This document shows positions 957-56,629 of a stretch of 64,000 nt of DNA, in pieces. Both the position numbers and the translations under genes were made by a program. Numbering within the stretch: the first letter of the stretch is position 1; the number at the start of each line of letters is the position of its first letter. Source of the stretch: Saccostrea cucullata (taxonomy: Eukaryota); contig NW_026927173.1 in NCBI RefSeq assembly GCF_032062105.1, positions 124,001-188,000 on the forward strand, in the 5' to 3' direction. The notes beneath the pieces were generated by a model that did not search any database, had not been told where the DNA came from, and saw only the letters and a list, made by a program, of their open reading frames with translations.

Positions 957-3646
957 CTCTGCGGGAGAAAATGAAAACAAATAGACTGAGTCTAGAAGGC
1001 TTTGGGAAGAGGGTCCAGGAATTGGAGGGCAATCTACAAAATAAAGTGAGTACAAAGAAATTGGCCGGAAGAGATAAAATTTCTGATTAGAAAACATTTT
1101 AAACAATAAAAAATGCTGAAAGGGACTTAAAATTTACATCTTAATTGACAAGATTTTTGATTACACAACATCCATGATAATTTGAAGTTTTAGTTTATTT
1201 ACTATTAGTTATTAGTAATCAGTTTACCACTCTCTTTATCCTTGTAGCAACTGACCATTGAAGAGCTGCAAAGGCAACTACATTATGCCAAAATTTGTCA
1301 GCAGGATGAAATTAAGGTATGTTTTGAATTTGATCTGATACACCTGTACAATTATTATTACCCAGCTTTGAATCCGTCGTTTTTACTATTGATTTTACAC
1401 AATCATGTGACTTTGTGATCCGACTTAAGAATTTTTAAATGTGTTGTTTGTTCCCTATATCATTTAAAATGTGCCTATTGTTCCTTAGACCAATATATGT
1501 AAATGTGCCCATTTTAGGCTGTGGAGGATAAATACAACAGCATATGCAGCATTAACCAGAGACTGGAGGGGCAAATTATGTCCCTCTATGGTCAGATAGA
1601 CCAACTGCAACAGCCTAAACAGGCCAAAAGTAAGTAGTATTACTACCATATCAATGTATAGACAAATAGACCAACTGCAACAGCCAAAACAGGTCAAAAG
1701 TAAGTAGTATTACCACCACATCATTGTATAGACAGATAGACCAACTACAACAGCCAAAACAGGCCAAAAGTAAGTAGTATTACCACCACATCATTGTATA
1801 GACATACCAATTGACAAACTAAAGCAGTCAAAACAGCCCAAAGGAAGTAACATTTACCCACCATATCATTTTATACAAGTTCATGTACTCTGTTTATTAT
1901 AACATTATATATAGGTAGATATCATAAATAAAGCTGGGTAGAACTGCAATAAACTATTTTATTTTACTTTTACATGTAATACAGTATTAAGAGACATGTC
2001 TTAGGGATTTTTATTTTATTATTAGGCTGAAATCTCACAAAATAGGTAACTTCTAGCTTAAAGTTTATAGCAAGTTTTATAAAATGGAACAATAAAAATG
2101 CATGCAAATATATCTGAAACATGCTTTTAAAAAAATTTTTATTGTCTAAAGAACTTTTACAGTTACTGGTATGTCTTTTGAGCATGTCTTTAAATTATAC
2201 AAGAAACATTTTCTGCCTCTCATTCTTTAATTGCAGCAGTTTGATCCTTATTAAATCTCGGTATTACTAACTTTATTTCTTCATAAAATGAAAAACAACT
2301 TTTAATATTTAACTATAAAAGCCTGTTTGCTTGCTGTCCAAAAGAGGTACACATATTTGACTTTAAGGTCAGTGGTCAAGGTTATATGTGGTTATATTTG
2401 TCAGATTTGTTAAATGCTAATAAACCCACATGTGAAATATCATACCTTGGACATGATTACATGTGAAAACCAAGAAAGATGAAGAAATAGAACAAAGCAA
2501 ATCAGACAAGTTCTAGGACCAGGCAAACAAAAACTAGAATAAAGCTCATTTTTCCTTCAAGTGGAGAGATTGGTAGAATGTCTCCTAAAATTAAGTGTTT
2601 ACCTGTCTCCTTTGTTAATATAGCTGTAAGAGGATACCGTTACTGGTTCAGTATTTATATCCTTAATTACATAGATTTGGACATCCAACATACATGTATT
2701 TAACCCTATACGATTCCAGTCTCATATTGCTACTTTGATCTTTCGAAGCTGTTGGAGAAAACTTACTGATTCAAAGGTCAGAATCTCAAGATTCAAAGGC
2801 AGTGATAAATGATACTTTGTACTGGATCTAATATAAAATATTAATACCCTATATTCGGAGACAGTACCCAAGAACTTGTGAAAAAAAAATGAAGCATGCA
2901 TTGCACCAGCTCTTGTAAATCTGTATCAAGTGATGCTGCGATCATTCAAGAATCATTCCTGCACAAGTTAATTACTCGGTAACAAATACCATCATCACTC
3001 CATCTCTTTGCAGCATATCTCTTAATTTCAAGTCTTTGCATGAAAAACTTCAAAATATGTATTTATATCCATATGTTATTGTAATTACAGTAATAAAACA
3101 AAGTGTTTAAAAACAAAACACCTACAAGTTTCAAATTAAAATAAAAAGTACATCATTGAAATGACAAGATGCCTAATTTAACAAAGCATTTGTTGTTTAC
3201 TTGTATCAATATTGTATATTTATTAAGCATGTTAAAATGAATATTAATATTCACTGTTTACAGTTTCCATTCCACAACACCACCATGTATCAGATGATAG
3301 CACACCCAGAGAGAGAACAGGATCTGTGCCCTCCAAGCCCCCCAGCGTCAAACCTCTACTTACAAAGATCAGTAGTGTCCCCTTAGGATGTGGACTGGCA
3401 GGTCCCCCACCCACAGGGGTCAGGACAGGTCAGGAGGGGTCAAGGTCACACCATTCAGACACAGGGAAGTCAAGGTCGGAGGTGACAGGAGCACACCTGA
3501 GTGGGCGGACAGAACGGTCAGAGGATGCTGTGTCTGTATCCTCCACGGAATCGATGGGGTCCTCTGGGGTCAGGCGGGGGAATATACTCCACAGTGATGG
3601 AGAGGAAAAGTCACTGTCCTCTAAAGACAGTGGTTATAATAAATGA
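957..3646 (+). CDS. TSC1: Hamartin (tuberous sclerosis 1), last four coding exons: 957-1045, 1248-1316, 1518-1629, 3264-3646; 5' exons are outside the window
   Basis: GT-AG exons join in phase to give ..KRVQELEGNLQNKQLTIEELQRQLHYAKICQQDEIKAVEDKYNSICSINQRLEGQIMSLYGQID.., which aligns by eye with the human TSC1 coiled-coil end ([58 protein letters not shown]). A Ser/Gly/Pro-rich tail follows. Confidence 0.8.
1597..1875 (+). repeat. ~70-bp tandem repeat (3 good copies plus 1 degenerate) spanning a TSC1 exon end and splice donor
   Basis: atagaccaactgcaacagcc.aaacagg.caaaa|gtaagtagtattac.acca.atca.tgtatagac starts at 1597, 1667 and 1737. Confidence 0.9.
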
Positions 3647-53922: not shown

Positions 53923-56629
53923 ATGGCGTCGTCCAAAGGCTCACATGTTTCCCTTTCCAAAGAATTAAAGAAACTTTTAAAGCAATTTCCAAACTTAAAA
54001 ATTATGGATGATAAACCAAGGGTGTGTACAATTACTATATATCATCATTATTTATTTATTCCTGGCATAAATTTTAAAATAAGAGTACAATAAATATTTC
54101 TAAAATTATTTCGAATTTCCTCCATAGCATATTGAGTAAACTGAGCCACGATTGTGTGTTCTTTACGATGATTCTCACAATTTATTTGTCTCCTTACTTT
54201 TTTGATCACTCAAACACTATAACATAACGAAAGAATTGTTAAAAAGTAAGGTTATGCTGATATGAATCCTTTGCCATGTTTACATTATGAAAATATTGAT
54301 CCGGAATAGACCAGATATTAATCTCATTTTTATACACGTAGTTATAAAATCGGCTGTGCTGTTGGATTAAATGTTATTTGAAATAAAGAGCATCAACATT
54401 TTTTTTCCAATCAGCAATCACTGTTCTATTTTATGATTCACTTTATTAAATCCAGGCTCCAGGACACAGAGTGGAACTTTGAAGTCAATACTTTCTCAAA
54501 TTTTCAATATAACATCATGGCCCATATGTTTCTATAGCATTTCATATGGAACGACATGTATTATAAAACTTAATTCATCTGGAAATTATTGAAACTTATA
54601 ATTTTGGAATAGGTTTGATTGAAACATCCTTGCACTTTCACAAAGTAAACATCAGTCACAATCATTTGGTATTTATTATTGACTATGATCTTCGTAGATA
54701 CAGTCTCTTGTGTAATTTGGTCCACTTATTGGTTTAGGTCATTTAAATGTTCTTAAAATCTTGTTATTTTAGATCAAATGTTCTTTATCAGGCCATGAAA
54801 TGCCTTGTCAAGAAGAAGCTATCCAGAGCTACATTAAAGGCAAAAAATTTCAGAAACTGCAATCAAAAAATCTCTACAGTTATGACAAATATAAGGAACA
54901 CATAGTGAACAGCAAGAAGAAAGGCAGAGAGTATGTATATTTACATATAAGTGTTTCATATCTTGTCAAATTTTGCTACATATTCTTACTTGGGTAAGAA
55001 TTGTAAAGATTTTATCATTTTAATGCACTTTTTTGGAAAAATTCCTTTTCAAACCTTTTCATTTTAGTGCCAAATCACATGCCAATATTACACCTCTTAA
55101 CATCCTAACTAGTAACTACACATGTATTTCCAATCATTCCACATATATAATTTATTCACATTTTTCTGAATTTGACAATCAATTTTTAAATTTATTTGCA
55201 GGCATCAATTATTTTGCCTACTCACTCTGAGACATTTAAACAATAACCCAGAACACATCAAACGACACATAGAGGGACGGAAATTTACCAAGGCTTACGC
55301 CAGATGTAAGTATTTGTGTGGGTTCTGGAAACTTTGATTTTGGTGAGATTAAAAGAAAAAAAAACTGTCAAACATCAGTAAATTTATTGCATGATTTTTG
55401 AGTTAAGCTTACATGTTTCTGAATAAATATACACATGAAAACTTGTAAAACCAAACGAAATATGAATCTGAATTTAATTTTTTAGTGGATAATGTATCTG
55501 CATTTTTTTGATTTAGGGGAAGAATGTCAGAAAACTGGTGAAAAGTTTCAGCCATTGGCAGGAAAGAGGAGGAAAGACACAGAAGAGGAGCTGGAGGAAG
55601 GAGAGACAGGAAGTGATGTCGACAGTCTCAGTGACCTATATCCAGGTAAGCAGTGGAACTGTTAATGTTGGTTAATGTAAGAATGGAATCAAACAGCTGC
55701 CTCAAAGCCCTTGAGAGTTGATCCTCTCATTATAAAGACAGAAGTAGGACTTTTCATTTTTTGAAAAGTAAAAAATATTGATAAAAATATTCAGTCTCAC
55801 TTTGAGTCTCCTATGCATCCATGTGCAATATACCATAGTTAATGTTTCATATATTTTCTTTCTCTGAATATGAAGTCTTAAATCGTTTTATTAGACGTTT
55901 AGAACTCAGGTTTTTGTTCTTCTACAATAACTTACCAGTACTTATGAATAAATGAAATACAAGCTCTGAATTAATACTTAATGATACATTACTTTTCTGT
56001 CATGGTATGCAATGTAGATAATTGTGTGAGGTGTAAATATTTCTATCCTTTGTTTACAGCTGAGGATTTAAATGAGGAGGAGGAGGAAGATTCTGCCTCA
56101 GATTATGACGTGGATGTCATGGAGAAGGAGAACGGAGAGGACAAGTCAGTGAAGAATCTCAGTCAGGGACAGAAACGGAAGAAAAGGGAGGTCAGTAGGG
56201 TGAACCAGTACTTAATGATTGCGTCAAACAGCAAGAATGACCATTATCAATAGAGGATATGGGAACCAAATGAGAAAAACTTTAAAAAATAAGTCATTTA
56301 GGATATAACAATATTTTTTAGAGAAAATTAAAATCAAATTAATAAATTTTAATAAAATTTAGCTCTTAAAATGGGATAATTATTTTACTTAAAGTGAAAA
56401 ATGTTATCAAATTTAGAACTGAATATAAACAGATGTATGAAATATTCCACTTTTAGATGGATTGACTTTGCTTAAAAGGTGTACTGGTTCCTGTCTATTT
56501 TCCAAAGTGTTTTAATTCTTTATGATCACAAGTAATTATTGACAGAATTTGAGTTTTCAAGAGGAATGTCCAAATGTTCTTTTTTTTATTTTCCAGGGAA
56601 AGAAAAAGACAAAGAAGAAAAAGACATAA
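53923..56629 (+). CDS. SURF2: Surfeit locus protein 2, ~217 aa; exons 53923-54021, 54773-54930, 55202-55305, 55517-55645, 56060-56190, 56597-56629
   Basis: All junctions are GT-AG and in phase. [56 protein letters not shown] matches human SURF2 ([54 protein letters not shown]). The tail is acidic then basic. Confidence 0.93.

Follow-up and report, generated by a model that had tools for sequence, protein, structure and literature searches.

Synteny between amphioxus and the regions paralogous to the major histocompatibility complex (MHC), the so-called proto-MHC, was reportedly described by Abi-Rached et al. (2002), and whether this gene-dense neighbourhood was already compact before the vertebrates is a long-standing question in MHC research. 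The human MHC-paralogous blocks have been delimited as 1q23.3-q25.3, 6p21.33-p21.31, 9q33.2-q34.3 and 19p13.2-p13.11 (PMC13012124), and the same study, from 2026, reports a single amphioxus chromosome as the counterpart of human chromosomes 1, 6, 9 and 19, with the proto-MHC genes scattered along its whole length in five assemblies. Its authors place the compaction after the cephalochordate split and argue that the neighbourhood was not compact before the vertebrates. Slowly rearranging spiralian genomes provide an independent outgroup for this problem. Here, we analyse a window of 64,000 nucleotides from the oyster Saccostrea cucullata, across which the genes TSC1, MRPS18B, PPP1R10, AXDND1 and SURF2 follow one another. 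We regard it as probable that this stretch is an ordinary, gene-dense part of an oyster chromosome, descended from the linkage group that was later quadruplicated into the MHC paralogons and showing three layers of conservation of differing depth.

The genes of a divergent pair commonly stay together because they share a promoter region, and in a bidirectional-promoter pair the divergent start sites lie less than about 1 kb apart and have regulatory elements in common. Conserved metazoan microsynteny involves gene pairs that are adjacent in several phyla, which are often divergent or contain interdigitated regulatory DNA. Catalogues of such blocks have reportedly been compiled by Irimia et al. 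(2012) and Simakov et al. (2013). The human PPP1R10 and MRPS18B genes share a bidirectional promoter (PMC2774331), and YY1 and ETS proteins bind to the Surf-1/Surf-2 bidirectional promoter of mammals, according to the titles of Gaston and Fried (1994, 1995) as cited in PMC2995075. To the known macrosynteny, the window adds an oyster example in which tight packing is seen for at least some genes from the human paralogous blocks and two divergent pairs are old, together with an apparently unreported spiralian microsynteny, SURF2 and AXDND1, that carries a conserved promoter-proximal element.

Five orthologues of MHC-paralogon genes follow one another in the oyster

The window corresponds to positions 124,001-188,000 of the 294,464-bp contig C9310, which belongs to an assembly of 1.17 Gb in 23,869 contigs. 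Because this DNA is AT-rich (GC about 0.33) and intron-rich, all homology searches were run exon by exon with stop-free pieces. With arrowheads marking the direction of transcription, the gene order reads TSC1> <MRPS18B PPP1R10> <GPCR <AXDND1 SURF2>, where GPCR is a G-protein-coupled receptor gene; TSC1 and MRPS18B are therefore tail-to-tail, as are PPP1R10 and AXDND1, and about 78 kb extend from the first Hamartin exon of TSC1 to the SURF2 stop codon (Table 1). A previous reading made from the sequence alone had placed these five genes within 56 kb of the window. All five were identified, with orthology backed exon by exon. MRPS18B, PPP1R10, AXDND1 and SURF2 are indeed inside, but only the 3' part of TSC1 is, since its Hamartin exons lie upstream.

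In the whole genome, PF04388 (Hamartin) matched only C9310:102,623-111,802, on the + strand and 12-21 kb upstream of the window start, in the form of seven collinear exon matches that cover model positions 28-727. Coiled-coil pieces on the + strand run on from this region into the window, where three RNA-seq runs carrying the same species label gave spliced joints at 1043/1246, 1314/1516 and 1629/2026. The second and third joints have GT..AG ends and the first reads as GT..AG after a 2-nt shift, and a script check showed that the three joined exons form a single open frame. PDB searches with these 3' exon pieces gave no match to the solved human TSC1; position, strand and splicing argue that they belong to TSC1, and they would form one transcript with the Hamartin exons. 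The gene would thus present PF04388 followed by a C-terminal coiled coil.

In addition, most RNA-seq reads with this species label matched window positions 1-6000 at 95-99% identity, not at 99% or more, and many of the differences are fixed, which points to high heterozygosity, to another population or to a cryptic sister species.

Beyond the Pfam match listed in Table 1, three consecutive exon pieces of MRPS18B (8504-8635, 7762-7887 and 7512-7739) are collinear with residues 60-94, 99-118 and 117-161 of S18b/mS40 chains in the PDB, the piece matching residues 60-94 with E=9e-5. The same searches matched no S18a or S18c chain with these exon pieces, and no PDB match was obtained with the C-terminal piece. 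The gene combines, then, the S18 domain with an S18b-specific N-terminal segment. Stronger Ribosomal_S18 matches were found on three other contigs, C607, C21075 and C12846. Two of these loci, C607:8245-8376 and C21075:595763-595894, have the same score and the same open reading frame (ORF) length although they are on different contigs. They probably represent uncollapsed haplotypes, and this would partly account for the size of the assembly.

The first coding exon of PPP1R10 matches the TFIIS-N domain of human PNUTS (PDB 6ZV2/6VTI, E=1e-13) and exon 20728-20967 matches the PP1-binding peptide 4MOY_B (E=7e-6), while Pfam returned Med26/TFIIS_N and, in the last exon, zf-CCCH. The TFIIS-N domain, the RVxF-type PP1-binding segment and the C-terminal CCCH finger are thus all present. 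One intron of this gene also contains a repeat of about 210 bp (17999-18209) with at least 40 scored genome copies at 80-89% identity, among 2084 first-look candidates, which is probably a SINE (short interspersed nuclear element) or MITE (miniature inverted-repeat transposable element) family.

AXDND1 was identified through weak collinear exon matches and a large protein search, because a whole-genome search with PF10211 (Ax_dynein_light) did not return the window locus and recovered only the canonical dynein light chain gene DNALI1, on contig C21811. Two adjacent exons weakly match consecutive parts of PF10211. A protein search with the 80-residue exon 46880-47119 gave 178 relatives, and the named full-length ones that were looked up are nearly all AXDND1, from sponge to mammals. 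By tblastn, the exons are collinear with a mussel-like transcript (19 segments) and with amphioxus AXDND1 (13 high-scoring segment pairs), and residues 1-1100 of the S. cucullata AXDND1-like isoform X3 protein align to 51351-34459 on the - strand with 96-100% identity inside exons. These matches fit an AXDND1 protein of about 1000-1150 residues that is collinear with named orthologues and has a divergent Ax_dynein_light domain. SURF2, finally, was recognised by its PF05477 domain, and its exons at 54.76-54.94, 55.20-55.32 and 55.51-55.66 kb are kept in four other species (tblastx); a further short last exon may lie 3' of these, toward 56629.

The human orthologues of the other four genes lie at 6p21.33, 9q34.13 and 9q34.2. 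Human AXDND1 maps to 1q25.2 (PMC12627472), and all five orthologues fall inside the published blocks (PMC13012124), as the earlier reading had anticipated. The five-gene set is thus a group of linked genes with human orthologues in at least two of the four paralogous regions. Given that orthology holds and that the human positions are inside these blocks, the assignment of the region to the linkage group that gave the MHC paralogons is supported. That five of five genes map to paralogons adds little beyond the known macrosynteny, which predicts the same for every window taken from the homologous oyster chromosome.

Two head-to-head gene pairs and the DNA between them

Of the two divergent pairs, MRPS18B and PPP1R10 are separated by the larger interval, and the CpG observed/expected ratio within it is uneven. 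Beside MRPS18B, at about 9-12 kb, it is mostly 0.8-1.3, with one 500-bp bin (10.5-11 kb) at 0.32, compared with a window mean of 0.46, and it is low (0.1-0.3) around the PPP1R10 ATG. A PPP1R10 start site or untranslated first exon placed far upstream, near MRPS18B, would fit this profile.

In the interval between AXDND1 and SURF2, which is CpG-enriched, blastn detected a conserved non-coding element directly upstream of SURF2 (Table 1). The element occupies the same position in scallop, with 83% identity over 47 nt (E=1e-7), and in limpet, with 76% over 59 nt (E=0.002), and is partly kept in the annelid Owenia. It carries a GCCATTTT core, which is YY1-like, and tandem GGAA/CGGAA cores, which are ETS-like, where both labels follow consensus cores. 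The strict pair of motifs occurred once each in the loci of the limpet Lottia and the scallop Ylistrum and was absent from the remaining 42 loci.

The SURF2-AXDND1 pair is retained among spiralians

We compared the neighbourhoods of AXDND1 in nine other species, taking one gene per species and 10 kb on either side. SURF2 is head-to-head with AXDND1 in all four other spiralian genomes looked at, which belong to three phyla, with gene-model gaps of 0.4-1.2 kb: 0.95 kb in Lottia, 1.2 kb in Ylistrum, 1.0 kb in Owenia and 0.4 kb in the nemertean Tubulanus. Just past SURF2 stands ABHD16 in Owenia and a BET-family bromodomain gene in Tubulanus. In Ylistrum, moreover, PPP1R10 lies tail-to-tail 4.8 kb downstream of AXDND1, as a 907-residue gene product with TFIIS_N and CCCH domains. 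Searches by tblastn with the oyster exon pieces agreed with the annotation, with SURF2 matched in 4/4 spiralian loci and, in scallop, also the zinc-finger exon of PPP1R10. Since oyster and scallop share the PPP1R10-AXDND1-SURF2 order, this order has persisted since at least the pteriomorph ancestor, and the arrangement is at least pteriomorph in age. Genes other than PPP1R10 are found within and just downstream of AXDND1 in Owenia, and none is annotated downstream of it in Tubulanus. In the literature searched we found no paper naming both AXDND1 and SURF2.

The five non-spiralian loci gave a different picture. AXDND1 is accompanied by two unannotated genes in amphioxus (Branchiostoma), by a homeobox gene in the sea anemone Nematostella, by an Edg1-type tetratricopeptide repeat gene, TTLL11 and INTS5 in the sea star Acanthaster, by a photolyase gene in the acorn worm Ptychodera and by a CaM-binding gene and a G-alpha gene in Priapulus, a priapulid. 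None of these five has SURF2, PPP1R10 or MRPS18B within 10 kb of AXDND1, and tblastn found no SURF2 or PPP1R10 there. The expectation that, in other invertebrates too, these genes would be closer to each other than random members of the same linkage group is thus not borne out outside Spiralia by the surroundings of AXDND1, with SURF2 or PPP1R10 within 10 kb in 0/5 genomes.

Other features of the window and contig

The GPCR gene of the window is intronless, and in the equivalent scallop interval there is no annotated gene and no tblastn match to it; because no counterpart is annotated or detectable there, it is probably a lineage-specific insertion. A DIRS-like retroelement fragment occupies an AXDND1 intron, between the exons at 43416 and 40176, with reverse transcriptase, RNase H-like and tyrosine recombinase pieces across three overlapping frames. 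At the start of the window, positions 1-800 consist of tandem units of about 166 bp that form look-alike ORFs, with a very high RNA-seq depth (up to about 290x) and many loose ends; these are an abundant transcribed repeat and no part of TSC1.

The contig was surveyed by a scan of 150 long ORF pieces, which included Hamartin among its matches; several other contig pieces gave no match to Pfam. The radial spoke head gene upstream of TSC1 and AXDND1 are two cilium/flagellum genes on this contig, which also holds several transposon families. A weak XPA_N match among the 150 pieces (E=3.6e-4) could not be traced to any zinc-finger piece and was disregarded. Type V/XI collagen genes, COL5A1 and COL11A2, are MHC-paralogon anchors, and the fibrillar collagen gene beyond the window might be a further paralogon marker. 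Neither Pfam nor PDB searches found a TSPN-type N-terminal domain in it, and because this domain could not be shown we do not assign the gene to type V/XI. The Gly/Tyr-rich ORFs clustered downstream of the collagen are possibly shell-matrix or byssus-type secreted proteins. Human BRD2/3/4 and ABHD16A are likewise MHC-paralogon genes; in the oyster genome the sole BET-domain match is on contig C15267 and ABHD16_N is on C13993, which in a contig-level assembly says nothing on chromosomal linkage.

Table 1. Positions of genes, intervals and other features (window coordinates, except where preceded by C9310)
Feature	Position	Strand	Evidence or remark
TSC1, 3' coiled-coil exons and stop codon	about 957-3646	+	Position, strand, splicing; ORF end at 3646
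MRPS18B (mitoribosomal mS40/S18b)	about 7083-9067, 5' limit approximate	-	Ribosomal_S18, Pfam 3.4e-5
MRPS18B/PPP1R10 head-to-head interval, up to first PPP1R10 coding exon	9068-17233	.	CpG profile
PPP1R10 (PNUTS)	17234-24745	+	TFIIS-N, PP1-binding RVxF region, C-terminal CCCH zinc finger
AXDND1	34456-51351	-	At least 23 coding exons
AXDND1/SURF2 head-to-head interval, start codon to start codon, 2.6 kb	51352-53922	.	CpG observed/expected 0.7-1.1, window mean 0.46
Conserved non-coding element, 56 nt, 23-78 nt upstream of SURF2 ATG	53845-53900	+	blastn
SURF2	53923-56253	+	PF05477 E=7.2e-15 at 54773-54994, 55.6 bits, cut-off 25
Intronless rhodopsin-family GPCR	31123-32175	-	7tm_1 8.5e-27 (Pfam); between PPP1R10 and AXDND1
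DIRS-like retroelement fragment	41369-43148	+	RVT_1 6.6e-15, RVT_3, Phage_int_SAM_1, Phage_integrase
N run	62072-62219
Secretin-type adhesion GPCR	C9310 about 28 kb
Radial spoke head protein exon	C9310:95,366-95,788	-	PF04712 E=1e-28; about 7 kb upstream of TSC1
Fibrillar collagen, COLFI and triple-helix exons	C9310:225,000-246,700	+	About 45 kb beyond window end; exons matched at about 230-246.6 kb
Gly/Tyr-rich, signal-peptide-like ORFs, clustered downstream of collagen	C9310:251,000-255,300 and 266,400-267,200

Discussion

The explanation that we favour, a gene-dense stretch inherited from the linkage group of the MHC paralogons, would comprise three layers. The first would be the chromosome-scale linkage that is already known and is common to amphioxus and vertebrates, and this linkage alone explains why all five genes fall at 6p21.3, 9q34 and 1q25. 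The second layer would be formed by two head-to-head pairs that recur elsewhere, MRPS18B with PPP1R10, also in human, and SURF2 with AXDND1, in spiralians; these would have been kept together because the genes of each pair probably share a promoter region, which would act as the constraint. The third would consist of the tail-to-tail joins, of which PPP1R10/AXDND1 is seen in bivalves only, through the scallop, and TSC1/MRPS18B in the oyster. The five-gene packing would then be a lineage-level feature, of molluscs or spiralians, rather than one received from the bilaterian ancestor.

The sequence-only reading had gone further and suggested a pre-duplication bilaterian neighbourhood, a proposal that is partly supported by our results. 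Its claim of membership in the linkage group stands, but that of a compact ancestral block is not supported in the form proposed, since the non-spiralian AXDND1 loci differ and the amphioxus genes are scattered (PMC13012124). Our results do not demonstrate that a compact block came down from the bilaterian ancestor, and the limited outgroup evidence, like the literature, points the other way.

Several observations weigh against the layered explanation. The immediate neighbours of the SURF2-AXDND1 pair are classic paralogon genes, the BET-family BRD gene in Tubulanus and ABHD16 in Owenia, and human TSC1, SURF2 and BRD3 presumably lie within about 1.1 Mb of each other at 9q34. In view of these neighbours and of this proximity in human, some local order may be older than Spiralia. 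The outgroups were viewed through a span of 10 kb on either side of AXDND1, so linkage at 20-200 kb would escape the comparison. Furthermore, the oyster start-codon intervals of 8 kb and 2.6 kb exceed a classical bidirectional promoter.

These same neighbours are part of the case for an older origin, in which the packing would be a relic of a compact proto-MHC core in the protostome-deuterostome ancestor. Reciprocal loss after the duplications would have left TSC1 and SURF2 at 9q34, PPP1R10 and MRPS18B at 6p21.3 and AXDND1 at 1q25, and amphioxus, echinoderms and hemichordates would have been scrambled secondarily. Such an origin would be in keeping with five orthologues that all lie within the published human blocks, with an orientation of MRPS18B and PPP1R10 that is the same in human, with the genes adjoining SURF2 in nemertean and annelid and with a fibrillar collagen on the same contig. 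The mapping of all five genes to paralogons is, however, expected from macrosynteny alone, and the collagen is not placed in a clade by Pfam or PDB. In addition, the AXDND1 neighbours are unrelated in 5/5 non-spiralian genomes sampled, the linkage of TSC1 is known from the oyster alone and the proto-MHC genes of amphioxus are dispersed in five assemblies (PMC13012124). We therefore consider this origin unlikely.

A further reading concerns local order, namely that the oyster/scallop order, the nemertean BRD-SURF2 adjacency and the annelid ABHD16-SURF2 adjacency together preserve the pre-duplication local order of the proto-MHC core. If this were true, the concentration seen in vertebrates would be ancestral and the dispersal in amphioxus secondary, which would reverse the conclusion of a post-cephalochordate compaction. 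We hold this to be distinctly unlikely. Very unlikely, in our view, is that everything beyond the two divergent pairs is chance juxtaposition in a conserved chromosome, under no selective constraint and with no bearing on MHC origins, since the PPP1R10-AXDND1-SURF2 order common to oyster and scallop speaks against it, although no regulatory reason for the tail-to-tail joins is evident, the block has taken up an oyster-specific GPCR and a retroelement, PPP1R10 is not among the annotated genes downstream of AXDND1 in Owenia or Tubulanus, and the radial spoke head, adhesion GPCR and Gly/Tyr-rich genes of the contig are presumably no paralogon anchors on the human map.

Compared with the proto-MHC of amphioxus, the layered arrangement that we favour for the oyster has in common that orthologues of genes from 1q23-25, 6p21.3, 9q33-34 and 19p13 are found together on a single invertebrate chromosome and that, in both animals, none of these genes has an immune role. 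The difference is one of scale, as the genes are spread over a whole chromosome in amphioxus whereas five are found within about 78 kb in the oyster, a lophotrochozoan, for which a 294-kb contig was examined. The human MHC class I region holds a PPP1R10/MRPS18B pair with a bidirectional promoter (PMC2774331), and the oyster pair matches it in both genes and in their divergent orientation, but in the oyster about 8 kb separate the start codons and a shared promoter would be suggested by the CpG-rich stretch near MRPS18B. SURF2 and AXDND1 resemble other metazoan microsynteny blocks in being divergent and adjacent in several phyla.

A further parallel to this last pair is the vertebrate surfeit locus, where SURF2 is likewise divergent from a close neighbour, SURF1. 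The likeness extends to the predicted sites just upstream of oyster SURF2, a YY1-like GCCAT core and ETS-like GGAA cores, whereas the spiralian partner of SURF2 is AXDND1 and not SURF1. If the likeness in motifs holds, the promoter logic of SURF2 would have been kept while its divergent partner differs, being AXDND1 in spiralians and SURF1 in vertebrates.

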